A stretch of 64,000 bases of DNA from Chlorokybus atmophyticus (GCA_009103225.1 RHPI01002161.1:68145-132144); one strand, 5' to 3'; positions 3,441 through 46,328 are shown, numbered from the stretch's first letter. The notes: generated by a model not told the origin, from the letters alone. Program-made: numbers and translations.

Positions 3441-5309
3441 TTGGTAGTAGGCTCTCGAGCACAATGCGTCTTTTGCACCTGTAGCCTGTGGGCAAGGCCA
3501 AACAGCGCGGTGTATCATATGCATGCTCTCTGGATGGCGGCATGCTTGCGAGACTGAAGGCAGTTTACTACATTAGTATTGGAGGCCTTATGTATATAGT
3601 ACCTTTATTGCTGGTAAGCCTGTTGTATTGTGCGCAGAGAGGTTGCAATCAGATTAGTAGTTTGTCAGCATGAAGTGCAGAAACTAGCTCTTGACAGTCT
3701 TATGGTATCAGGGTCATGAATGATATCCAGGCCGAACAGCACGCGGTACTGTGTGATGGATGTGTTGCTCACAACATTCCATCCTCTGCATGCAGTCACT
3801 CATCAGCGGTTTCGCACCAAGTCCCCCCAAGCACTGTTGTTGATGTAGATGGTCGTGGCTTACTAGGCCAGGGGAGCAACAGGAGCCAGTGGTTGTTGGC
3901 GTCACTGACGACAAGGTTGCTGGCGGGAGCAATCATTGCCCAGCAATGTCACTGGCGGTTGTGACCGGTCGTGCTGTATGTTGTACAACATATAGGATGC
4001 AGGGATTATGCTCTGCTAGGTATGGCGGATGGAGAACACACCTGACAGGCACACCATGTCCATATACCATAATAGAGATGATTATCGTTTGTGCGGTAAG
4101 CGTATGAGGTGTGGTGAAATGCGCAGTGCTAGATATGGAGGAAAAAAGTGATAGGCACACCATGCCAAGCAGACACATGCCATAAAAAGATAAGCATCGT
4201 TTGTGCGGTGTGCATATGAAGCCTGGTGATCGATAACAAGTGCAGCACGTGTGAAGTCCGTGTCTCACAAGGCGGATGGGATACATCTGGTGAGTGTAAG
4301 GGGGTATGCATAACCTTTGTGCAACATGTTAGTTATGCTCCCTGCCTGCTCGTGTTAACCACCACGCCTTTGCATTTGCACATAGTGCATTGCAGCATGT
4401 AGTCTACAACCTTGTGTAATTGAACGCCTGCCCCTGCCTTGTCTGCCTTGTTCGTTGCCGGCTTTATGCTTGCTGCTTTACATGTGCATATGTTTGTATG
4501 TGCACGAATGTGCATTATCGACCCATATCTATACCATATGCATGCCCAATGGCACGAGCGATGGAGCTGACAAAGTGTTGTAAATATGATAATCTTTTGG
4601 GGGGCGATATATTCTACCCATTCGAATGGAGACTATGGCCATTTGTGAACTCCACTCCACTCCTTCGATAGGACTTTCATTGCCTGCTGCGGCTGTGGCC
4701 GCTGTGCGCGAAACCGTCTTGCGTGATGGCCAAATTGGCGGCAGCAGGTGTGGACAAAAAGTGTTGGTCAGAGGGCTTCTTGCAACTAGCCCGACATCCC
4801 ATGACCTGCAGGGCGCGCATCATCATAGAGGAAACATCCGCGATCGCCGCAATGCCGGCTAGGGGCCATTGCCGACGAACCCGCCGACCACGGAGGCGGA
4901 CCTGGCGTTGGCAATGGCATGAAAGACGAGGGTGCAAAAGGCGTGCGTGTAAAGGCGGATGAGAAGGCCCTCCACGCTCGGGGCGTAAGCATGCCATGCA
5001 AAGCACAGGCTGTGCTAGCTTTCGATGTGCATGCACATGTGTGTAGTGTTAGCTGTATTGCCATAATAGCGAGCATCACCACCATGGTATTGTTATGTGA
5101 GACACGCAATGTTGTGGTATAGCTATTAATGTTTAGGCTGTCAATGATAAAAGATATTCAACTTTGTTAGCGTCTCATTTATTTCGCTATTCTCTATGTC
5201 GATGCATTGCGTGCAACCGGGAAAGTTCGGTTGCCCTACCGCGGCAGTTGGCGCTTGGTGCATGCGCGTCATATTTTTCCTTTGCGCACGGTACCCTACT
5301 AGTCAATGG

Positions 5310-5830
5310 GTGTTAATGATAGTGATAGTAACAGGGATAGGGCTTAAGATAGGGACACTACTAGTATTAGTTGTAGTGATAGTGGTAGTGGTAGTGATGA
5401 TGCTAGTGATAGATATGGTGATAGTGGTAATGGTAGTGATGGGGCGAGTGATAGTTGAAGGGATAGTGGTATCGGTAGTGATAATAATAGTGATAATAAT
5501 AGGGAATGGCTCAAGACAGGGAAAGTACTAGTGACAGTTGTAGTGATAGTGGTAAATTCAATGACAAGGGTAGTGATAACGTATTGTAATGTAGTTTAAT
5601 TGCAGTGATAGTGGTAAGGACAACAATAGTGATAGTGATTATATATATACTAGTAGTAAGAGTAGTGGTAACCGATTGTGGTAATATCTTAGTTTGTAGT
5701 GATAATGGTAATGTTAGTTGTAGTGATAGTAATATACATGGTAAAGATAGTGATAACTTGACGCGATATGATGCTAGTTGTAGTGATAGTGATAGTGACA
5801 TGGTAGAACCAATAGCAGCATAGTGATTAT
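5310..5830. repeat. Degenerate AGT/GAT/GGT low-complexity tract
   Basis: About 520 bp of gtgata/gtagtg/gataat variants with no continuous ORF. Confidence 0.8.
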
Positions 5831-6397
5831 TATGGCGGCTGAGAATACGAGCGCCAATTGCTAATTAGATCACTATGTCCCAATATCCTAATTCATTATA
5901 TTAAAATGATATATAAGATTGATTTGATTAGTTGATTGGTTACTTTCAGCCTCCCTCCTGGTTTTAACATGTCTACTGCGGTGACACAATATTAAAAGTG
6001 TTAAAACCATTCCATCACGTGTAATTTGTTGAACGCAACTTACCATAGCGCAACTTTATAATAACTTTTATTGCTGCCAGAATTGATTGCCATTTGTTGC
6101 AGGGCTCAGTTGACTTACTGCATAAATGTATTGCATGCTTGTGTAAAATTTGATGTGAAAACCGCTTGTTATTGATACATGCGAAAATGTCGCGTTTTAA
6201 GCACAACGTTATTCTACGCACACATTGAGTGTGCTGCATTGTGTTTTTTGGGTTTTTAATGACTGTTGTAATGCATTATTTAGGTTTCTTTGATACGGTC
6301 GCTTATATAAAAGCAAAAATGCAAATGGGAATAAGAATACACACATGCATGATTGCTGTAAGAGTTTTTTTTGGGTGGTGGGGGGGGGGGGGGGGGG

Positions 6398-6454
6398 NNN
6401 NNNNNNNNNNNNNNNNNNNNNNNNNNNNNNNNNNNNNNNNNNNNNNNNNNNNNN
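6398..6454. other. Assembly gap (57 N) flanked by poly-G
   Basis: Run of N with G homopolymers on both sides. Confidence 0.99.
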
Positions 6455-6585
6455 GGGGCTCTGATGTGCTATAGCGCAAGACGTTTAGGACTAGATTGCT
6501 ACTACTCGGACCAACCAACCAACGATAACATACAACATACACCCAACCCGAAGTACAGCAGGCAGGTAGGAGGGGAGGGGCAGGG

Positions 6586-7648
6586 TGTAACGTGGCTACT
6601 AGTTATGCTCTAAGTGCTTGGACATATGTGAGATAGACAAACAACAAGCATGTATGCTTGCTGCTACAAGGTAGACATTTTGTGTGGAACAGTTAGCCAC
6701 CTATGTCTATATTGTAGATGTTAACATCTTTTATGTAGGTGTTTATCAGACAGACAATGATGTGGGCTACTTAGCCACAAATGTCTAATATGTAGTGTCT
6801 ATATTGTATACAAAGAAAACTAGGAAGACAAGTATGCTAATATCTAATACATAATTGCGGGTATCTTACATATAAATGTGAATAACATACCTTTGATCTT
6901 GATATCACACGGACGTATGTTTGAAGAATATTGGAAGAGTCAAGCATAGATATCACACACAAGGGCGTGGATATTTTAGCAATGATGTTCACACTGTACA
7001 AGACACTGTGGACATTACACGTGCACTTATCTAGAAAATGCTAGAAGAGGCAAATGCGGGTATCGCACGGAAGTACGCTGGTATTGTAGACTGCAATATT
7101 AATATCACAGAGATTGGTTTTACAAACTGTGGTGACGAGACTGTGTGGCCAATACCATGAGATTATAGTACAATCTCATTGGTTGCTCATACTTGGAGTA
7201 AGATATCCTTGAAGGTGATTGGTGTGAGCCTAGTAAGGGCAAGTGCAAGAGTGCTTGTCACAAGATGGTTGGCGGCTTTAGATTACACTAGGGTCCGAAT
7301 GAGGCACCATTGCTGGGAACACCCACGACCCTTAAGTGACTAGATAAGGCAATGGGGGTATATAAGTGAGCATGCTTAGTAGGCAAAGCATTGAAGACTT
7401 GGTCCTACCTTGCCTTGGCGTGCTCGCTCGTGTGGGACTTCACGTGGGGTGTTCGCGTGAGAGGCCGTTCAAGGGGGTGTAAAAGCTCTTCAACCTCAAG
7501 GTGTGGACGTGTGTCCTTGTGTAGCACTTGTGTGTGAGTGTATGCACGGTTTGAGCATGCTTGCACTTGTATGTGAGTGCTTGCACGAAGTAGAGTGCAT
7601 GACCCTTATAGGTGAGAGCTAAGTGCTTAAGCTTAGGGTGGCGTTACA
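6586..7648. mobile_element. Solo LTR (1063 bp) with 5-bp TSD CAGGG
   Basis: Starts TGTAACG and ends CGTTACA (7-bp terminal inverted repeat). CAGGG lies at 6581-6585 and 7649-7653. TATATAAG at ~7359. No internal coding region. Confidence 0.85.
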
Positions 7649-8961
7649 CAGGGGAAGCAGACAAGTCAGGCAAACCACCTGCGCAGCAGGCGTGGAGAAT
7701 TTGGCCGGGTTCTCAGCATCACGCAACAAGGACAAGGACACCTTGGAGGACGACCTGACAAACAACGGACTAGGCCCCAGCCGCCAAGAGTCCGCACAGC
7801 TCTTTGCGTACCTGTCACATCATGTATAGTGTATAAAAGATGACAATGCATGCAGACACTTTGTACGTACGATGTTGTGTGTTGCAACGGCCACACGTGT
7901 AAGACAACATATGCTTGACACGGCATACAAGCATGGTAGCATGATAGCATAGCAATGGCACATGAACACATCATTCAACAAGCATGAGCATAGCAGCATG
8001 GCATCATAGCAGTGACTTGCATGCGGGCAGGCAACCTGCTCCCCACACTTACTTACGTGAGTGCTTACCCGCACTTGCATATGTTGCTGGTCTGATGTTC
8101 TATGTACGAGGTGAGTAGTTTTTATAGGTACCGCCAAAGATCACCTCTGTCTGCCTTTGTGATCCACTTGCACAACACTCATAACGGCATTTGCTTGTTA
8201 TATCATAATCCAGCATAGCCCATTACAATGACACCATCCTGTCCTGCAGGAAATGTGAGAGATAGGTAGATAACCGTGGAGGTAACCTCAAGAAGCGAAT
8301 GCACGGTGAAACTACCCCAAACTTGAAAACCTTGATACTGTCGTGGGGTAGACACGATTATCGCGTGCCATGTATTAAAAAGTGATAAATGCAGTAATTA
8401 CCCATGTACTATATTCCGCATTTAACAACTGGTTATACATACATATGCGTTGATTGGGCCAAGCCCCTGCCCAAGCCTTACCTGAACTGCCTTGTTGTTA
8501 GTTGGTGCTTGCTTGCGTGCGTACTTGTATGCTATGTATTTGTCTTATTGATAAGCCTATATTCATATATGTATTATGATGTACATTGCATATATGTGCA
8601 CTGATGTCATTAGCACGCGGTCGCAATGTAACAGTGACTCACTATTGTGCGGCATACCAAGAATTTGGCTCAGATGTGTCAGTCGTCCAAGGCTCGTGGT
8701 GATCATGCGTTACTTATACTTTAGTAATTGTATCAGTACTTTTATCACTTGACATTGTTTGCATTCCGAAAACGACTCTAGCTTGCCAAGGTCCGCAGCG
8801 AAAGAGCTTGCTCAGCCGTGCGCGGGCAACACTGCCAGCCTCATCTTTTCTCTCTGGAGCTCGCCTGCCAGGGCGGCCTGCCAGCCGCCTTGGGCCGCCC
8901 TGGTCAAGTTGAGCTGCTGGTCTTTGGCACCCGTGCATTGCATGCAAGTGTTTGCTAGCTA

Positions 8962-34951: not shown

Positions 34952-37900
34952 CTACTGATGAGCTGCAGCAGTGGCACCGCCGCCACAGCACGCAGCAAAG
35001 AAGCCACCGCGCTTTTTTGGTTGCAAGGGTGTGGGCAATTTGCTTGTGACAGCAGTAGCAGCAGCAGAAGTCTTTGTAGTAGCGTCAGCCATCACCCCTG
35101 AGACCTTTTCAGCAGCCTTCATACCAACACCAGTCCCAGTGCTTGACTCAAAACCAGCAGGCGCAGGACCAGCTGCAAGACCAGGAGTTGGAGCTTGAGG
35201 CTGCACCAGAAACATAAGATCAGTGTGAGCCCCAGTTGATGTGTCTGTACAGCTACTGAAAACTTGGTGGGGCTGAACACATCAACAACATGAGCGACCT
35301 TGACGGGCGCATACGATTGTCTAACTGCACTCATGCTGTCATATGCAAACCATAACGCGACCATGGCGCACCTCAGCGGCGGCTTCAGACACGATGCCTT
35401 GCACAGCACTGACTGGCGACACAACTGCGGGTTGAGTAGTGGTTACCTCCTGCTGCAGGGGAGATGTAGACATGGGCAATGCTGGCTGGCCTGTGGGTGC
35501 GGCAGCAACCTGCATGGCCATCACACAATGAGTGTCAGTGCCGCAAACTGCAGGCTTGCGCAAATGAAATCTAGACTATACCTCTATCTCTGCACGTGTT
35601 GCAGGGGCAATGCTTGGGGGCACAGTAGTTGCTGCAGCTGGCGTCATGCCAGGAACACTCAGCTTGCCAAATGCAGTCTTGCTGGCCTCGCCCACCTTCG
35701 CAGCCGTCGTGTTGTCAAGCCCAGCAGCAGCTGCACCCTGTGTTGCATACTGCTTCACCTGATCAGGGCTGACCTTGCTCATGAATGAGCCGACCTGCCC
35801 GCCAAGGCCAGTTGAGCCTGTTGGTGCGACTGGCATCGTCTCTGCAGCTGGCGTCACAGGTGGTGCTGGTGCTGCAGGGCTGACCTTGCTCACAAGCGAG
35901 CCAACCAACCCACCAAGGCCAGTTGACGCGGTTGGTGCACCTGGCGCCGATGTCTCTGCAGCTGGCGTCACAGCCGGTGCTGCTGCTGCAGGGCTAACCT
36001 TGCTCATGATTGAGCCAACCAGCCCGCCAAGGCCAGTTGAGCCGGATGGTGGCGCCAGCGTCTCTGCAGCTGGCGTCACAGCTGGTGCTGGTGCAGGGCT
36101 GACCTTGCTCATAATTGAGCCAACCAGTCCGCCAAGGCCAGTTGAGCCGGATGGTGGCGCCGTTGTCTCTGCAGCTGATGTCACAGCTGGTACTGCGGAT
36201 GCTTCTGGCGATGTCGAGACTGCAGACCCCGCAGTCAGCTTTGTGAAGCCAACCTTGCCCAACTCCCCAACCTGTATGGCCTTGGCGCTGTCCAACCCGG
36301 CAGTGGAGGCAGCCTGGGTGGTGTACTGCTTGACGGCGTCCGGGCTGACTTTGCTTGCAAAGCTGCCGAAGGTGCTGCCAGCAGCCCCTGTGAAGCCCGC
36401 TGGAGTGGCCCCTGGAGCCTCTGCGGGAACAGTGGTTGCGGCTAAAGTTGGTGCTGCCCCAAAAACACTCTGAGCTGAGACTGGCGTTTGGACAGTTGAT
36501 GCTGTCGCGCTGGTTGCGGTGGGTCCCGCGAACTTGCTAAAGGCATCCTTGCTCGCTGTGCCCACCTTCATGGCAGTTGCCAGGTCAAGCCCGGCAGCAC
36601 CTGCGCCCTTCGTTGCGTACTGCTGAACTTGATCAGGGTTGACCTTGCTAGCAAATGACCCGATAGTTCCTGACAAGCCACCGGATGATGGCAACGCTGT
36701 TGTTGGCTCTGTGGCTGGAGCTGCTTGCAAAGGTGCAGAACGCGAGACATCCAAACCAAATGCGGAGAGGGAGGGGTGTGCAGCTTCGGGTTTTGAAAAG
36801 ACGGGCTGAAGATCAGCATCCAAAGGATCTGCCTCTGGCATAGAAGTTGGCATTGCGCTTGGCTCCTGCACGCTCAAGGATGAAGTGATTGGTGCTGCTG
36901 GCTGCGGCACTAATATCGTCGATGGCTCAGACAAGGGCACAGAGACTGGTGATGCAACTGAGCTGGGCTCTTGCACGCTCAGAGGTGTGATTGGCGCTAT
37001 AGGCTGCGGCACTGGTATAGTTGATGGCTCAGACAGAGAAGAAGTGGGGATTGCCTGTGTTGATCGTGTTGCCTCGCTTGTGGCCATGCTGGAGATGCTT
37101 GAGACAGAGTACTCTGACCCTGCTTCAGAAAGCACACTTGTCGACGGTGCCTTCAGCAGTGATGGCTCAGTTGGGGCACTCGAGACAGAAACAACATCAC
37201 CAATTGTGCCCGGGGCTGTTCCAGGAGGAATTACGACTTGGGTCAGGAGAGGCTCTGGGGCAACCGTCTCAGCAGCAGTGAAGGGTTGTGCAGCAACTTC
37301 AGCTGGAAACTCTGTAGCACTTGGCTCCACACGCTCAAGAGGCGTCAAGGCTGGGGGTGTTGAGATGGCTTGAAGCGAGTCCGCAGCAACTGCAGGTTGA
37401 GCAGCTGCAGCCTCAACTGCTGCAAGAGGCTCAGCAGAAGTTTCCGCAGGGGCAAACATGGAGGAGTCCCCTGATGCTGTCAGGACCTGAGGAACCTGGG
37501 TATCAGGTTGTGGCGATTCTGCAATCACAGGCGCCACCATGTTGTTAACAACCTCCTCTGCAGCTTCAGGCAGTGTAGACTCAGCCATTGGTGTGGTGTC
37601 GACAGATTTCACTGCTTCGCTCGCAATTGGAGTTTCAGTAGTGATGGGAGCAGGATGCCTTGAAGTCAGTGAGGTAGCAGCCCTACCAACAACTCCAAAC
37701 AGACCGCCAGCAACAGCACCGACTCCGCCAAGGATGCCACCTACTAAGCCGCGGCTCGGGCTGGGAGCTGACTGCGCTGGCTGTTCAGCAGCAGGAGTGG
37801 AAGGTTCCATGGCGGACGACGGCTCACTTGGCACAGGTGGAACTTCAGGTGCAGCCTCCATGCTTTCTGTAGCGCTGTCAAAAGCACGTTGCGACTCCTC

Positions 37901-40900
37901 TGACGGTGCGGTTAGAGCAGCCTCTGTTTCAATCACAGCCGGTACTTGCTGCAGAAATGAAGACCTGTCTTGGGCAACGGAAGTTGACCCACCAAGCGCG
38001 CCCACATAAGCATCAGCAACATCAGTTCCAATTGCAGGAACACCGGAAATCCCAGACACTGGGAGCGTCATGGGGGGAGCTTCCGATATGGGTGGCGTGG
38101 TAGCTGATACTGGCACTGCAACATCCGCATTTACGGGGCCAGATGTTGGAGGCGCAAAGGCAATAGACGGTTCTGGCGTAGTGGCTACATTGACATCAGA
38201 TGCATGAAGACTAAAATCAGTTGATGGGAAGATGGATCGAACATCTGGAGGCGGCGCTTGGCTGAGACCGGTAGGAACAGTGCTGTTGTTAAAGCCTTCT
38301 GTTGCGGTGTGCACACTACTGGCAGTGTCAATTGGTACATCTGTAGCCATTGCGCCCCCAAAACCTGCTTCACTTGAGGCCGGAACTGCATTGACCCCTT
38401 CTGCAACAGAAGATGCCGCTGCGTGAAAATTTGGCTTGTGTCCTTCAGGATACATGCTACCAGCCTCCAGCGCATCGGCCTTGGCAGCTTCTTCTGTGCG
38501 GATGACTGGAAGCTGAGCTTCCAGGCTTTGCGCATCAGAGGTGCTCGCAGGCAGGCTTGTTGAAGGTACACCTCCACCAGTCAGAGCGGTGGGTACCAAA
38601 GCCTTGGCTCTGTCCACCAAGCTCGGGCCCTCTGCTTGTTCGGAGCCAGTGAATGGCAAAGCACTTTTTACTCTCTCTGTGAGAGTGGGACCTTCTGAGG
38701 AAGTAAGTGACTCGGGGAGCATGCTTTTCACCTTTTCACTTACTGTGGGATACTCTGTCAGGCCCTTGGAGTCCAGCAACTGTCCTACACCTTCAGCTGG
38801 CGAGGTAGCTGACTGTTGTTCGGCGACAGAGTCTGCACTCACTCCGGCTGGTTCTGGCAACAGATCAGGTGCAGCGGAGGGTTGAGTAGGTTCAACCAGT
38901 CTGTCTGTTTCGAATGCACTCGGTGGTGCATCACCGGCAACTGGGCTGCTGCCACTAACAAATGCTGGCAAGAGACTTCTTGCCTTGTTAACAAGCCCAG
39001 TGGTCTGAGACTGTGCCTGGTCCACAAGGCTTGCACCTGTACTCGACTGTCCAAAGCCAAAAGATGGTACTGCACTCTTGACTTGCTCCGTCAAACTGGG
39101 GCCTTCCGTAGAGGTCAAAGACTCTGGCAGCATACTCTTCACCTTTTCACCAGCTGTGGGGTACTCTGTCAGTCCCTTAGAGTCCAGCAGCTCACCAACA
39201 CCCGCAGTAGGCTGTCCTGGTGCACTGATCTCCTCAGATGGTATCGAATATTTGACTTGGTCAGTCAAACTGGGGCCTTCTGTGGAAGTCAACGACTCAG
39301 GAAGCACACTCTTCACCTGTTGCCCGACTCGATCAGTCAAACTGGGGCCTTCTGTGGAGGTCAACGACTCAGGAAGCACGCTCTTCACCTGTTCACCGAC
39401 CTTGTCGGTCAAACTGGGGCCTTCTGTGGAGGTCAAAGACTCAGGAAGCATGCTCTTCACCTTTTCGCCAACCGTGGGGTACTCTGTCAGCCCCTTCGAG
39501 TCCAGCAGCTGACCGACACCTTCAATAGGCGGTTGTGCTGCACTCACCTCCTCTGCACTTAGTGCAAATGGTGCTGTGAATTGTTGCTGCATATCCTGCA
39601 CAGCATCCCCGCTCGTCAAGCTGCCTGTATCGAGAGCGCTGGTTTGGGATGCAGTGCTATCCGCTGGAGTGGTGGACGCAGCAGAGGATGGCAGAAGGGC
39701 CTTAGCCTGATCTACTAGACCACTAGGGGCGACCAAGCCCTTAGACTCAAACAAGGCCGGGATGCTGCTGGAATGTTCCTGATCGGCCACGATGCTGCTG
39801 CTGCTTGCTTGTAGTGCATTGCCGCCTGGGACTGCGCCACCCAGGGCGAGAGAGGTTGGAAGCAGGCTCTTAACCTTATCAACCAGGCTGCTCGGCGCTG
39901 TGGCACCCTCTGACTCCAACGTGCTCTCTGGTGAAGAATCTGCTACTGCACCACCAGCTGCATCTGTACCAGCAGCTGGCAGGTCTGTAGCAGAGGTGTC
40001 GACTGCCTGGCTGTCAGAAGGCACGTCTTTCAACGGGGCCTCAGCTGATGACGCGGATTGATCTGTGCTTGTGCTTGTCTGCAGTACATTGACAGCTGGA
40101 GTACCGGACAAATGCAGGAGGCCCTTCACCGTGTTAATGATTCCACTAGGCGCCACCAAACCTTTTGACTCAAACAGAGCGGGAACATCACCTTCTGAAG
40201 GTCCAAGGTTCAGTGCAGAAGGGTCAGCCAGCGCACTGGTTGGCTTGTCAGCTGGGCCAGCAGCGATGCCTGTGATTGCAGCTGCAGGAGAGGTTGGATC
40301 CGTCACTTCGTCAAGAAGAGAGGGAGCTTCTGTTATGATGGGGGCAGGTTCTGAAGGCTGTGGCTGGTTGCCACCCAATGCCACAGGCCACGCGCTCCTT
40401 GCTTTGTCCAGCAAGCTAGGCTCCTCACCAATAAGAAGTACGGACTCCGCCCGTTCCATCACTGGAACGCCAGCAGAGGTATCCAGAGGCTGATCGCTGC
40501 CTTGGGCTCCCAAGCTTGCCGCGCTCGGTGTATCCACATCAGTCTCCAACAGTGGCATCGACTGCGTTTCCGCTAGTGGAACAGGGGTTTCCTCTGGTAG
40601 CAAAGACTGTGGGCCTATGGACATGCTTTCATCCACCGAAGATTCTGTTCCATGAGATGTTGGCAACAGACTCCTCACAGTGTCCATTGCGCTAGAACCC
40701 AGCTGTTTAGCACTTGAAGCGGTGTCTGTTGAGCCTGAAGGATATCCTCCCAGCGACGATGGCAAAACCTGCTTGACACTCTCCATCAGGCCTGCAGACT
40801 CTGTTTGGCCTTCACCGGAGCTGGTGATGGATGCCGGCAATGAACTCTTAATGCTGTCAACAACGCCATAAGTCTGGCCTTCTGCCGGCGCCTGGTTTGA

Positions 40901-42668
40901 GCCAGTTAAAGACGCTGGCATAGCGCTTTTGATGCTGTCAACAAAGCTGGAAGTCTGCCCTTCTGCTGGTGCTTGACTGGCGCCAGACAGCGATGGGACC
41001 AAGCTTGACGCACGCTCCATCACAGATGGCCCCGTGGAGGACTCTTGAGGGGCAGGAGACCCGGAGCCGGTGAGGGATGCAGGCAGTACGCTCTTTAAGC
41101 TGTCAACAATGCCATAGGTCTGCCCTTGTGCCAGCGCCTGGTTTGAACCAGTTAAGGATGTTGGCAAGGCGCTTTTGATGCTGTCAACAAAGCTGGATGT
41201 CTGCCCTTCTGCTGGCGCTTGCCCGGTGCCAGGTAGAGACGGAACCATGTTTGATGCACGCTCCATCAACAATGGATCTGTAGAGGACGCTTGAGGAGCA
41301 GAAGATCCGCCAAGGGATGCAGGCAGTATGCTTTTCACGTTATCCACCAAGCTCGACTGAGTTGCGCCGGCCGTGACATCTACATCTTGTGCCATAGATG
41401 TGTCGAGGGAATCACTTGGGTTATCAGGCAAAGGGGAATACGGCACTGACGCAGCAATGCCAGGCGTGAGTGTGGTTGCACTTGATATTGTGTCCTCGGT
41501 GCCCGCAAGCGCATCTGAATGTGGCAGTGTGCTTTCTGACACAGTTTGTGCCTCACTGCTCGAGCTGAACGACCCAAGGCGCTCTATGTAAAGTGCTTGC
41601 AGCTCGGCGCTTTCTGATGGACTGAGCGTTGTGGGCAGCAATGGCTGAACCTGCTCACAAGCCAAGAATCAGGACTGACTGTCCCATATGAACAAATGTT
41701 TGTGAAGCGGTACAAAATGCAACTTGAAGGCACAGTGTATGCGACAGCACGCACTGAGGACAAAACTCAACAACTGCCGACTCACAAATCAGATAGGGCG
41801 TGTGCAAGATTCACATAGTCACTGAATGGACTGTGGAGACAAGGCACTGAACTCACGTTGGTACAACAATTATTGATGTGATTGTTGCTGAGGTTAATTA
41901 ATGTGAAGTTGCTGCAAAGCTTACCTCATCAACCTTCGGCGCTGCTATCAGCACGGCCTGCTCTGGCGCGGCATCCCTAGTTATCTGTCCGCTTGCAGCG
42001 TCCTGACAAGCCGCGAGCATGACTTTAAACACATATAACAAAGGTCTGCTCTATACCAAAATCCGGCGGTGCTGAACTGGCTGGTCAGTTCATAGCGTTG
42101 CACTCAAGCTGGCAAAAGTGGCTTTCCGGGCAACGAACCGGAGCGAACAATAACCAGGGCAACAGAACGCCACAGAGAGTATTTCTCAACAAGATGGATC
42201 TGGTACAGCTGTCCCGTGTGACAATATTCGCAGTAGGAAATGCAGACGCTTGACCATACAGCCGCAAGAACTAACCAATGCCTGCCATTTCCTCACCACG
42301 ACAAGGGCAGGTTCCTCTGAAGCTTGTGAAACCATTGGTGACATTGAGCGCATGCCTTCCGGCGTAGCGAAGCCACTGCCGCTGTCGTCCGCACCAGTAC
42401 CCACCTGAGCAGACACGCAACTGTCAACGTTAGGCACGCAAGCAACCATTCCAACCCCCTTTCGGAAGGAAAACACCGTGGGTAGTATACAATGATAATA
42501 CCGTGATAATAAACTGTGTGCATGCATGCGCCTAACCTGCGTGGTATCTTCATCTGTCATGTTCGCCTGAGCGTCGTCAAACTGGGCATCGTCTGCCTGA
42601 GCATCATCGCCTACTACCGGTGGGGCCTCGCCAGCCAGTCCGGCCGGCGTGCCCTGTTTATTGCCCAT
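34952..42668 (-). CDS. Giant (~2,257 aa) S/A/P/T/G-rich, probably disordered repeat protein
   Basis: Exons 42668-42537, 42404-42297, 42002-41925, 41650-35582 (6,069 bp), 35509-35372 and 35200-34952, all with GT-AG phase-0 junctions and no stops. Begins MGNKQG (context GCCATGG) and ends KKRGGFFAACCGGGATAAAHQ*. Confidence 0.85.
39250..39470 (-). repeat. Coding tandem repeat, 75-bp (25-aa) unit
   Basis: Unit 'VKSVLPESLTSTEGPSLTD.VG.Q'. The DNA motif 'gtcaaactggggccttctgtgga' recurs at 75-bp spacing, with dispersed copies near 38690 and 39090. Confidence 0.85.
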
Positions 42669-43526
42669 GGCCTGGACTGACTGCAGCCACCGGCAAACAG
42701 TGTGAGTCAGTGTGTATAAAACCCCCCCATGCACATCTTGATGAGGGCATGCATGTAGCTTGGCTGGCAAAACTTCGGCGGTATTTGCTATCGCTAAAGC
42801 TGAATGACAAGCATGCACGGAAGAAGTAACACAAAGGACATACAGTGCGCTCCTCCGATGGTGCAACAACGCTTGACCAAGCACTCCGAAGAACCAAAGC
42901 TGCGCAAGCCAACAGCAAGCAGCGACAGGAGCACATACATTAGCAGCTGTGCTCAGCAACGGCTATCGTAGCCAGGCGAACGGCGGCAAAACCACCATCA
43001 GTTTCGCAAGTTATGCAAGCTGTTCTATATGACCAGCCCAGCTGCAAAGCTTCACCTTTCGCTACTGCGCACCCGCTCAACCAAGCTTCTTGGCATGAGT
43101 ACAACTACAAGCTAGCATGAGTAGCGGCAGGCACCTGGCCGTCAGCCCGGGTGAGTGGGTCTCCGGGCGTATCCGTCGCTGCGTCTTTTAGGCGCGCAGG
43201 TAGAAGAGTCCTTTAGCAGCCCGTCCGGACCAGCGGCCTGCCCCTCACGCACAAGGACGGCCAAGACAATGCTGTCGCCGTCGCCACTAGGCCTATGACA
43301 GGACACGCAGTTGAGTTGCAATCAAGCGAAGCGGAGTCGCTTCAAGACAGAAGATGACAACGAGCGGATTTTTTCGCTCGTCGGTTCGACACACGTGTAC
43401 ATCGACGGTGATACACGATAGTCTATCATCGTCGATAGAGTGTTTAAGGGGCAAGTTACCCGTTGGCAACGGGAATCAGTGGGCAACGTGGGGGATCTCT
43501 CTCTCTCTCACTCTGTTGCATGCGAG

Positions 43527-43561: not shown

Positions 43562-45594
43562 TGAACTCAGGACATGCAGGCTGTATGTCATGAGTTTTCA
43601 TCTTACAACACACTAGCATGCTTCACATCCGTGTAACCTTAACCTACCACATACTGGACCACAATAAGCCAGATCTTATGCGCTTGTACATGGGCGGAAA
43701 TCGATGGCCCGATTGAGACTCACATAATACTTGTGTCTGTGCCAGCTACGTTGCACGCAAATGTGCGGATACAAGTGCGCGAACATGAAGACCAATTGGC
43801 ATTTTGAGGGACGAATAACTTTCCCTGCAGCAGGCACATTTTCAAACAATTTCAATGAGGAAAGGAGAAAAAATACGCGGGGCGATTAGATGAGCATGGT
43901 GATGGTTCCTTCAAAAGTCGGAATTTTGATTATTCAACTTTTTACTTCGCCGTTTACAAGCCCCAACTTTCACTGTTGCCCCCTAATGAAGACCTTATAT
44001 GTCTTAAATTCGGCTTTTGGCCTTCATGCGAACATAACAAAAATTGTCAACTGTTGTGGTATCGTTTGATGTTCATACAATAAGTTAGCGCATAAACTGT
44101 GTGCACGACACGCATATAAGTTCATGCATCGCAAGTCGAACGTCGTAACAAGCTAATAATCGTATCTAATAAAGTATAAAAGCAACACATACTACAATGG
44201 GTTGTACTATTATTGTTACATTAAGATGTATACATGCTGCATAAGCTAATAAGATGTTGCTAATGCAATGTCACATGCAAACTCACACAAGAACACACAG
44301 TAACACACTCAGCGGCAAGTATGCTATGTGCATGCTGTTGGATAGTTGCATGCAAGGAGTTGTATATGTTGACATTAATGACAGTAAAATGCATGCAATG
44401 TTAATACTGTGTAAAGTTACAAGCTTTGCAACATGTATACAGTCTAACCCGGCTATAAGAATACTACTTGCCACTCAATTTCAAACTTATGATAGGGGTA
44501 TTCTATTGATTGTTATAAAACCGCATAGTCTTGAAGCGCATGTAAGCACATATTGTGATAATGATAATATGGGAAAAATTAGACAATCATAACATACTTA
44601 TATCTCATGCACTTGATACCACGTGCATAATACAAGATATGTGTAGCCTATATACATATCATGTCATTGTTTTCTCTCGTCGTGAGTATAATAAAGCGGG
44701 AGTTGACATATAATTCAATATTACCCCTCGCGGTTAAGACTATTCTTGAGCCCATAGCTGTTTATTAGTGCGGACATCGTTCTTGAGATTCTAATCTCGT
44801 GATGAGGTTAATCGGCAAATATGATACTAGCGGGGGTAGACTGCACCACATTTGTCAAGCTTTGACATCGCGAGCGGCAGTGCGGCATGAGCACAATAAG
44901 TAAAAAGATAACTAAACAGTATATATGGGCTTTCCCATGGCTTCATTGCAGCAAAGTACACCAAGCACATCACACTACATGCACACTCACAGACATCAGG
45001 ATCTGCACGAAACACAACCTTAACTATATATGGAAGGGGTAGGGGCAAGGACTATATATGTGCACTGCTTGAGTGCATGCAATGTGGCGTAGGGGAGGCG
45101 GGGAAGCAAGTGAGCAAAGCAGTATGGGCAAGCATGCAGACCTGTAGCAACAGCGCAGACCATATATATTACATGCATCAAAGTTACAACTGCAAATGGC
45201 ACGCGCAAAATTATGCGTACTTTCCAAATAATCAGACTTGAGCATGCAAAAGGTAAGCGCGCATTGCATTCTTAAAGTTGCATGTTACTCATTCACTCAC
45301 TTAAATTGTAGCTGGCTGACATTTTCTTGACGTTTTTCTTTTCATTAATCTGTAGCACTTATAATTAGATGTCATTGCTACTAACCACTATACACTAACA
45401 CTACCAGCATACATTTCAGACTACACGCAACTTCTATGTAGAGTTGAAGAACAAGAGCATTATCAGCTGTATGTATAACAAAGAATTGCATCATGACATG
45501 AATCACAGTAGGCACTACATATGGCAATGATAAAGAATGAGGAAACAACTCAGAAATGTCATGCAGTTGTTGTACATACGAGAACTGCAATGTG

Positions 45595-45880
45595 AGGGAG
45601 TGTATTGGATATGTGAAATGCTGTAGGCCACACGCATGCAACATAAATCCACGGTAACACATCGTTACCACTACACAAGGCTTCACATTGTTCACGACCG
45701 CCACGTGAGGAAGTATACAGGATATGTAAAGTGCTGTTTGGCACATGCATGCAACATAAATCCACAGCAACACTACATCATTACCTATATACAAGGCTTC
45801 ACATTGTTTACCACCGGGCCCACCACTACTTCTACACTACACTATCACTACCGCCCAGCCCCATGAGACATGCATGCATG
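45595..45880 (+). repeat. Two tandem copies of the short dispersed repeat also seen at 34141-34300
   Basis: 'ggatatgtgaaatgctg...gcatgcaacataaatccac...acaaggcttcacattgtt' occurs twice about 113 bp apart. Confidence 0.75.
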
Positions 45881-46328
45881 TATTAGTGACAGGTCCCTGC
45901 ACCACAGCTGCTTGTCAGCAGCCCACTCCTACAGTGCAGCACAAGAAAAATATGGCTCTGCGCGAAAGTTGCATCAACCCCTGACTAGCAGCATGTTAGA
46001 GTATGACACACCAAATTGCCTACTGGAAAAGAATACTTGTGATCGAGCACAACCGCGACAACATGTCCTAAACTGCATCTGCGCCAATCAGCGCTTGCAT
46101 CTGTACAGAAAATGCGAGAGGGGTATGTACAGAAAATGCGCAACACGTATGTGTGAAGAACCCAACAAATTGGACACATGTTTACAGCAATCACGTGGGG
46201 TAACTTCGGCTAATGAGAGCACCTGGTCCGGCAGCTTGCAACGCTGTAGACAGAGCTCAAGTTGCCGCATGGATTACATTGCTAACCCCTTCCCAAAAAG
46301 TTTGTTATCTACAAGGTTCGATCTCAAC

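Follow-up and report, generated by a model that had tools for sequence, protein, structure and literature searches.

A giant acidic, disordered protein of Chlorokybus carrying about two dozen copies of a K-segment-like amphipathic motif

We analysed a stretch of 64,000 nucleotides from Chlorokybus atmophyticus (GCA_009103225.1, RHPI01002161.1:68145-132144; hereafter the window), in which an initial annotation, made from the sequence alone, had noticed a giant disordered protein that repeats a motif resembling the K-segment of dehydrins. We conclude with high confidence that the minus strand of the window encodes a real, expressed and lineage-restricted protein with a K-like motif that is under selection, and that this protein is not a dehydrin. 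The gene product consists of 2,257 amino acids, with a mass of 222.5 kDa and an isoelectric point (pI) of 4.17, and on the reading that we hold with about even confidence it would serve as a lipid-anchored, multivalent scaffold of amphipathic helices on a membrane or lipid surface. Strain CCAC 0220, from which the genome derives, now bears the name C. melkonianii (PMC8611356).

A word-index search with the motif region as the query retrieved the database protein P0001 (jgi/Chlat1/1766/Chrsp134S02101, Chlorokybus atmophyticus), also of 2,257 amino acids and 100% identical to the gene product, so that the predicted length of about 2,257 residues proved correct. When P0001 was mapped onto the window, it resolved into six coding exons totalling 6,774 nucleotides, which equals 2,257 codons and the stop, and all of the intron borders were GT..AG. 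The motif array lies in a long open frame (35576-41665, minus strand), with a repetitive translation rich in Ser, Ala, Pro and Thr, and the exon first described as 6 kb indeed measures 6,069 nucleotides. The gene is organised as follows, where UTR denotes the untranslated region.

34952-43337, minus strand: whole gene (P0001 mapped exactly onto the window, and RNA contigs)
43135 (lower end) to at least 43337 (upper end), minus strand: 5′ UTR exon (RNA contig ends)
42681-43134, minus strand: 5′ UTR intron (loose 5′ ends of RNA contigs map to 43138-43167)
42663-42668, minus strand: start codon and Gly2 (context GCCATGG)
42537-42668, 42297-42404 and 41925-42002, minus strand: coding exons 1-3 (exact mapping of P0001)
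35582-41650, minus strand: main coding exon 4, 6,069 nucleotides (exact mapping of P0001)
35372-35509 and 34952-35200, minus strand: coding exons 5 and 6, the last including the TAG stop (exact mapping of P0001; gene model)

We then examined the transcription of the gene in public sequencing data. Seven runs were listed, five of them containing part of the stretch, and four were aligned to window positions 36950-42900; the two 3′ introns, which lie beyond, are canonical in the gene model. Contigs of runs X1, X2 and X3 skip 41649-41922, 42002-42295 and 42403-42534, matching the modelled 5′ introns, and since the skipped segments have CT..AC ends on the plus strand, hence GT..AG on the minus strand, these contigs represent RNA. 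Intron sequence is present in run X5, which represents DNA. A 5,976-nucleotide contig of X1 runs colinear with the window from about 36130 into the 5′ UTR. Transcription was thus seen in ordinary transcriptome samples (assembled contigs, three RNA runs), among which X3 stems from a second Chlorokybus lineage, with a nucleotide divergence of about 4%. The 5′ UTR exon was also joined to exon 1 by script to read the frame upstream of the ATG. The spliced 5′ UTR carries an in-frame TAA 93 nucleotides upstream and no upstream ATG within 278 nucleotides, and the N-terminus MGNKQGT is therefore firm.

A census by regular expression and hidden Markov model (HMM) yielded 20 canonical motif copies, each scoring 25-41 bits against their own profile, together with four degenerate copies (three MERA[SE]xx[VL][PL] variants and one IINTVKGLLH). 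The total of 24 agrees with the roughly 24 motifs first reported, and the interval proposed for them, 38590-41360, brackets the array exactly, from the first core at 41321-41350 to the last at 38591-38620. Some of the copies are preceded by an auxiliary motif.

38591-41350, minus strand: motif array, 20 canonical and 4 degenerate copies (regular expression and HMM)
41321-41350, 41162-41191, 41081-41110, 40916-40945, 40835-40864, 40760-40789 and 40661-40690, minus strand: canonical cores 1-7
40385-40414, 39857-39886, 39689-39718, 39443-39472, 39371-39400, 39299-39328 and 39239-39268, minus strand: canonical cores 8-14
39125-39154, 39065-39094, 38966-38995, 38714-38743, 38654-38683 and 38591-38620, minus strand: canonical cores 15-20
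41240-41266, 40994-41020, 40433-40459 and 40112-40141, minus strand: degenerate copies
40157-40177 and 39734-39754, minus strand: auxiliary motif L-F-E-S-K-G-L
39488-39508, 39170-39190 and 38759-38779, minus strand: auxiliary motif L-L-D-S-K-G-L-T-E-Y-P

Gapless alignment of the copies (A1) gave the unit [SG]-Φ-Φ-[DE]-x-[VAI]-[KR]-S-x-[LM]-P-x-S-L-[TG]-G (Φ, hydrophobic), which adds the P-x-S-L-[TG]-G extension to the motif as originally described. The Pro is invariant, and all 20 copies have Lys or Arg at the [KR] position. Successive copies are 20-176 residues apart, mostly 20-56, and the spacers between them are rich in S/T/P/A/G/E, consistent with the S/T/P/E-rich spacers noted at the outset. 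In 2,000 shuffles of residues 191-1140, the core pattern x4-[VIATL]-[KR]-x2-[LMVIW]-P appeared 0.33 times on average and four times at most, as compared with 20 observed, and the full motif pattern appeared 0.008 times per shuffle, as compared with 19 observed. The 10-residue cores make up 21% of the motif region and hold 28 of its 43 Lys/Arg residues. The motifs are amphipathic, as had been proposed: the mean hydrophobic moment of the motif 11-mers is 0.445, at about the 95th percentile among the protein's own 11-mers. The unit would make an amphipathic helix of three turns, its hydrophobic residues at positions 1, 2, 5, 8 and 9, stopped by the invariant Pro and followed by x-S-L-x-G. This helix carries an Asp/Glu-Lys pair on its polar side, and the Ser-rich polar face is nearly uncharged, with a net charge of 0 to +2 per 11-mer.

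We next asked how the copies are related. The invariant Pro is encoded by four codons and the two conserved Leu by four and five codons, and 61% of the identical residues between copies are written with different codons, while Ser is always AGY at column 15 and always TCN at column 20. Since the conserved residues are thus spelled with many synonymous codons, the copies are old descendants of one unit with maintained residues. Codon usage across the copies therefore shows that they stem from one ancestral unit of 16-17 residues, kept by purifying selection while the spacers drift. Recent tandem duplicates also occur among the units (72 nucleotides repeated three times at 90% identity, and 246 nucleotides repeated twice at 82%). 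The comparison of X3 with the window gave a second view of the same process. The 40 differences used, out of 95 listed, fall in 36 codons, 19 of which changed synonymously and 17 nonsynonymously. None of the 17 nonsynonymous changes lies in the 83 core and auxiliary motif codons, where 3.9 were expected (P about 0.01), whereas 7 of the 19 synonymous changes do, against 4.3 expected. All between-species changes at the auxiliary motif sites are synonymous. The absence of amino-acid changes from the motif codons indicates that the motif is under selection. In-frame insertions and deletions in the X3 orthologue are confined to spacers (+9 at 39602 and -12 at 39791-39798).

The motif was then compared with the canonical K-segment, EKKGIMDKIKEKLPG, of the dehydrins, which constitute group 2 among the LEA (late embryogenesis abundant) proteins (Pfam PF00257, gathering score 30.6 bits). 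The two align in register, s-L-v-D-k-V-K against G-I-M-D-K-I-K, and the residue class is retained at K-segment positions 5, 6, 7, 9, 10, 13 and 14 in 15-20 of the 20 copies, so that the parallel drawn in the initial annotation holds for the skeleton, at 7 of 15 positions, but fails for the lysines, with four of the five lysine positions lost. Indeed, Lys2, Lys3, Glu11, Lys12 and Gly15 are found in 0 of 20 copies and Lys8 is kept in 8, while position 10 is Lys or Arg in all 20; Glu11 is replaced by Ser, and Lys12 by a hydrophobic residue, which widens the apolar face. Over all 20 copies, 30% of the residues are identical to the canonical segment and 52% agree with it in class. A 15-residue motif window contains 1.5 Lys/Arg with a net charge of -0.25, as against 5 and +2 for the K-segment, and the hydrophobic moments are 0.445 for the motif and 0.42 for the K-segment core. 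The lysines are the most conserved residues of the K-segment (PMC5415607), and its binding to anionic lipids is largely electrostatic (PMC5415607, PMC8961592). With a nearly neutral motif in a protein of net charge about -142, such an electrostatic mechanism is unlikely here.

Scores against the motif profile suggest the same partial likeness. The canonical K-segment scored 5.7 bits, a Tribonema variant 7.4 and a K-like segment of reticulon 4.6, all three exceeding at least 99.98% of composition-preserving shuffles, while a Vitis segment scored -1.4 and a Klebsormidium K-segment -3.2 bits. The proposed profile comparison with dehydrins thus recovered the canonical segment in register and retrieved the dehydrin-like protein P0007 (see below), but the canonical segment reached only 5.7 bits. 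In Pfam, no family matched at E<=10 for the 2,029-residue exon product, the 924-residue motif region or eight motif windows of 27-68 residues, and the N-terminus gave nothing meaningful. The lysine-rich K-segment and the hydrophilic composition of dehydrins are both missing, and in composition only the near-absence of Cys and Trp fits; with a pI of 4.17 and a grand average of hydropathy (GRAVY) of -0.044, the protein is not a hydrophilin. The dehydrin homology first suggested was therefore not upheld, and our verdict from these comparisons is that the motif shares the helix skeleton of the K-segment in a protein outside the dehydrin family.

An exhaustive search of 1.84 billion representative proteins with the motif profile gave nine hits, namely the protein itself (518 bits) and eight others, to be read with the caution that E-values between internally repetitive proteins are inflated. 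Three of the eight are K-segment-like repeat proteins: P0004, a metatranscriptome protein with T-E-K-I-K-S-V-I-P-G repeats; P0006, which is Cz17g17130 of Chromochloris zofingiensis, with seven or eight M-G-E-K-I-K-Q-A-I-P-G-T repeats; and P0007, with four K-segments and a Pfam Dehydrin score of 28.7 bits (E 2e-6), just below the 30.6 cut-off, which no other of the three approaches. P0007 was retrieved at E 4e-5 and carries an L-P-D-S-[LM]-T-G tail, the same as that of the Chlorokybus motif. P0006 is encoded in the genome of a chlorophyte, the other two lie on contigs of metatranscriptome type (L002, L003), and all three may be unannotated algal dehydrin-like proteins. They resemble the Chlorokybus protein in bearing tandem motifs of the [DE]-K-[IV]-K-x-x-[IL]-P-G type in disordered, repeat-built chains, and differ in having 324-601 residues, 4-9 copies, a Lys/His/Gly/Asn-rich composition and a motif ending in P-G-T/H. 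Their copies score 2-12 bits on the Chlorokybus profile, as compared with 25-41 for its own, and no similarity was found between them and the Chlorokybus protein outside the motif.

The remaining five hits were rejected as relatives. P0002, P0003 and P0008 are translated tandem-repeat artefacts and P0005 is an unrelated coiled-coil protein. The 3,634-residue P0009, considered as a giant relative, was identified through PHROGs 58 and 1272 (E 1e-26) as the tape measure protein of a phage tail, encoded on a compact, intron-free metagenomic contig (L001:51-10955). Its five S-G-L-[VM]-D-x-A-K-S-L-M-P motifs, set in a Pro-Ala-Met-Pro-rich linker, differ little from the Chlorokybus motif and are the closest-looking of all hits, representing either a striking convergence or a common structural solution; the presence of a phage protein among the hits indicates that K-like look-alikes arise by convergence. 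Judged by these hits, the motif lies nearest to K-segment-like sequences in sequence space.

Searches for other homologues were consistently negative. Word-index searches with the motif region, residues 1140-2257 and the C-terminal 518 residues returned only the protein itself or nothing, the ESM Atlas gave no usable match to the motif region, and the motif profile matched nothing among all PDB sequences at E<=10. Thus, no homologue outside Chlorokybus was found by word search, ESM Atlas, PDB or motif-profile search, and the gene is restricted to Chlorokybus. Its identifier appears in none of the papers searched, nor in the supplements of the Chlorokybus genome paper, and the supplements of the dehydrin census make no mention of Chlorokybus.

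Concerning the protein as a whole, it is mostly intrinsically disordered and strongly acidic, with 231 Asp+Glu against 89 Lys+Arg. The composition is dominated by Ala (15%), Ser (14%), Pro (11%), Val (8%) and Leu (7.5%), with 2.8% Lys, two Cys and one Trp. AlphaFold2, run without an alignment, gave a mean predicted local distance difference test (pLDDT) score of 36.8 for residues 190-1140; the structure prediction suggested in the initial annotation thus supported disorder, while helices were placed over some motif copies only, short and at low confidence (pLDDT 50-59). A secreted or cell-wall glycoprotein was rejected as a candidate, as the protein has no signal peptide and begins with Met-Gly.

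Beyond the motif array, the protein contains likely lipid-anchor signals at both ends, a central glycine-zipper segment and folded C-terminal modules, none of which had been noted in the initial annotation.

37679-37759, minus strand: glycine-zipper-like hydrophobic stretch, Arg-flanked, residues 1404-1430 (Kyte-Doolittle)
35660-36682, minus strand: second repeat system, three-helix modules and a six-unit repeat
36530-36682, 36224-36379 and 35660-35806, minus strand: three three-helix modules of about 50 residues (AlphaFold2)
35765-36670, minus strand: six G-x-G-G-x-V-G-S-Φ-Φ-S-K-V-S-P units, interleaved with the three-helix modules
34955-35020, minus strand: C-terminal tail K-K-R-G-G-F-F-A-A-C-C-G-G-G (P0001 sequence)

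The N-terminus M-G-N-K-Q-G-T satisfies the N-myristoylation pattern G-{EDRKHPFYW}-x(2)-[STAGCN]-{P}, which predicts myristoylation at Gly2. In a 19-residue Kyte-Doolittle window, hydropathy peaks at 1.91 over residues 1404-1430, with all other windows at or below 1.3; this stretch has about 10 Gly in 22 residues, while the protein around it is acidic and disordered. It is a candidate element for membrane insertion and may span a membrane, form a hairpin or promote self-association; Pfam gave it a weak match of no meaning (YidB-like, E 0.035). The only cysteines of the protein, Cys2246 and Cys2247, are adjacent in the C-terminal tail, and the combination of polybasic, Phe-Phe and Cys-Cys elements makes this tail a candidate S-acylation site and membrane anchor. 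The C-terminal modules, in which the tandem repeat has a period of 105 nucleotides, were modelled, again without an alignment, with pLDDT 85-93, in contrast to values below 50 elsewhere. They matched no Pfam family, two of them were without an ESM Atlas match, and a structure search with the C-terminal model found generic helical hairpins only (best Z 6.9). The modelled three-helix module may therefore be an undescribed small helical domain. Elsewhere in the window, the G+C content falls to 0.41-0.45 at 4001-8000 and 44001-46000, as compared with about 0.55 otherwise.

From three independent anchor-like signals framing an acidic disordered chain with about 24 weakly hydrophobic helices, a surface-tethered protein is the simplest reading, and we infer, with even chances of being right, a lipid-anchored scaffold of multivalent amphipathic helices on a membrane or lipid surface. 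Myristoylated Gly2, the glycine-zipper segment and the polybasic/Cys-Cys tail would together tether the protein to the cytosolic side of a membrane or of a lipid surface. The many weak, nearly uncharged helices would fold there, either on the surface itself or on a partner attached to it, and draw their binding strength from their number rather than from charge. The protein would then act as a long acidic brush or scaffold, nearer to coats of the perilipin type or of the amphipathic lipid-packing sensor (ALPS) type than to the charge-driven K-segment.

Several observations weigh against this reading. The myristoylation pattern is permissive, and the exon encoding Cys-Cys is taken from the gene model, RNA contigs having been aligned over 36950-42900. 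If the central segment spans a bilayer, the two lipid anchors fall on opposite sides, and at least one of the three signals may thus be spurious. With about 10 residues ahead of the Pro, the helix core is short to insert stably into a membrane; AlphaFold2 predicts it in some copies only and at low confidence, and anionic membranes should repel a protein whose net charge is about -142. In addition, the between-species test drew on 40 of 95 differences, with motif sets defined after the data had been seen.

The same features could instead describe a multivalent sticker-and-spacer scaffold for proteins, in which the motifs fold onto a folded partner and cluster or condense it, as pyrenoid linkers do with Rubisco, or decorate a cytoskeletal or coat lattice, with membrane anchoring as the only membrane role or with none. 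We consider this unlikely, yet worth keeping in view: the invariant Pro, the near-invariant K/R, the D/E and the fixed x-S-L-x-G constitute sequence-specific conservation beyond the needs of amphipathicity, the regular spacing of 20-56 residues in disordered linkers is typical of scaffolds, and the acidity argues against direct binding to anionic lipids. However, a Rubisco linker of the basic, plastid-targeted type is contradicted by that acidity and by the lack of a transit or signal peptide, and a purely protein-binding role leaves the three membrane-anchor-like signals unexplained.

A kinship with, or analogy to, the K-segment and the dehydrins was weighed in two forms. In the bolder one, which we regard as doubtful, the array would be an early or parallel version of the K-segment, a helix poor in lysine ("proto-K") that recurs about 24 times in a giant, lipid-anchored protein; this protein would protect or organise membranes in drying, and other Chlorokybus proteins would reuse the module. 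The other, more doubtful still, takes the motifs for diverged or ancestral K-segments and the protein for a true relative or analogue of dehydrins; the protein would then act as a stress-induced protectant of membranes or proteins in drying or cold. The in-register match, with the canonical segment above 99.98% of shuffles, and the retrieval of P0007, with its four K-segments and common tail, are in favour of such a relative, as are the subaerial life of Chlorokybus (PMC7027972), reports from green algae of a few confirmed dehydrins and of pseudo-dehydrins whose K-like segments are weak and single (PMC11763121), and the fact that the hydrophobic residues of the K-segment are those needed for enzyme cryoprotection in vitro (PMC8961592). 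On the other hand, even single motifs drew no Pfam Dehydrin match at E<=10, the motif lacks the lysines on which both the definition of the K-segment and its attachment to anionic lipids depend (PMC5415607, PMC8961592), the composition is not hydrophilin-like, Y, S and F segments are absent, and the profile fits the tape measure protein of a phage just as well; E-values between repeat proteins are, moreover, inflated. Finally, a functionless or near-neutral repeat expansion in a fast-evolving orphan gene, its conservation reflecting recent duplication, is strongly disfavoured and most improbable, for although some units are indeed recent tandem duplicates and between species the spacers tolerate indels in frame as well as many replacements, synonymous sites are saturated between most copies while the residues are kept, replacements avoid the motif codons as silent changes do not, and the 6-kb frame is intact, spliced and transcribed in at least two species dated 24-76 million years apart (PMC8611356).

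Dehydrins were long considered a land-plant family, and the first confirmed algal members date from 2025 (PMC11763121). Chlorokybus, an alga of subaerial habitats, belongs to the branch of the streptophytes that stands furthest from land plants. With its selected K-like helix, repeated about 24 times in a new context, the protein is a concrete object with which to ask whether the K-segment skeleton arose once or is easily reinvented, and the phage look-alike argues for reinvention. If the proto-K reading were true, the origin of the dehydrin-type motif would lie before land plants and in a different molecular context. As a natural sticker-and-spacer protein it is unusually clean, and with its probable lipid anchors at both termini it is useful for studies of multivalent weak binding to membranes or partners.

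We lastly compared the protein with known systems. Lipid-packing sensors of the ALPS type have a Ser/Thr/Gly-rich, poorly charged polar face. The Chlorokybus array resembles perilipin 4 and ALPS motifs in its many weakly hydrophobic amphipathic repeats with such a polar face, and binding of the perilipin 4 type depends on total length or valency, not on charge (PMC5889406, PMC8064757). In perilipin 4 the 33-mers join into a single continuous helix, free of Pro breaks and disordered spacers, whereas the helices of the Chlorokybus protein span about 10-16 residues, terminate at a Pro and alternate with long acidic linkers; the two proteins have no sequence similarity. The invariant Pro at motif position 10 breaks the helix, while ALPS and perilipin helices run for about 20 or more uninterrupted residues. 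Plant proteins of the PCaP1/DREPP type combine a Gly2 lipid anchor with an acidic, repeat-rich, disordered chain at the plasma membrane; PCaP1 is about 25 kDa as compared with 222 kDa for the Chlorokybus protein, and the two have no sequence relation. Pyrenoid linkers of the EPYC1 type carry regularly spaced, Rubisco-binding helical stickers in a disordered chain and are basic and plastid-targeted. The Chlorokybus protein likewise places repeated helices between disordered spacers, without any sequence relation to EPYC1, but has a pI of 4.17 and an acidic Met-Gly N-terminus with no transit-peptide-like stretch.

With dehydrins, the protein shares a short amphipathic helix repeated in a disordered, nearly Cys- and Trp-free chain and the common skeleton G/S-Φ-Φ-[DE]-x-Φ-K-x-x-Φ-P. 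It differs in the extra x-S-L-x-G tail of its motif and in an acidic, A/S/P/T-rich composition, dehydrins being Gly/Lys/Glu-rich. Helix gain of the K-segments on SDS or anionic vesicles, and induction by dehydration, cold, salt or ABA, are further marks of dehydrins. As initially surmised, it is far larger than known dehydrins, about twice the length of the largest confirmed one (222 kDa against 183.8 kDa and about 1,140 residues; PMC11763121), and its 20-24 copies compare with 14 in exceptional poplar and willow dehydrins. Pseudo-dehydrins and the N-terminus of plant reticulons are likewise non-dehydrins bearing K-like segments, and some pseudo-dehydrins exceed 150 kDa and are more hydrophobic in composition than dehydrins (PMC11763121). 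These proteins have one or two weak K-like segments, whereas the Chlorokybus protein has 20-24 copies of one selected variant, and the reticulon homology domain is not present in it. The protein is a variant among disordered proteins built from K-segment-like amphipathic motifs, rather than a categorically new principle.

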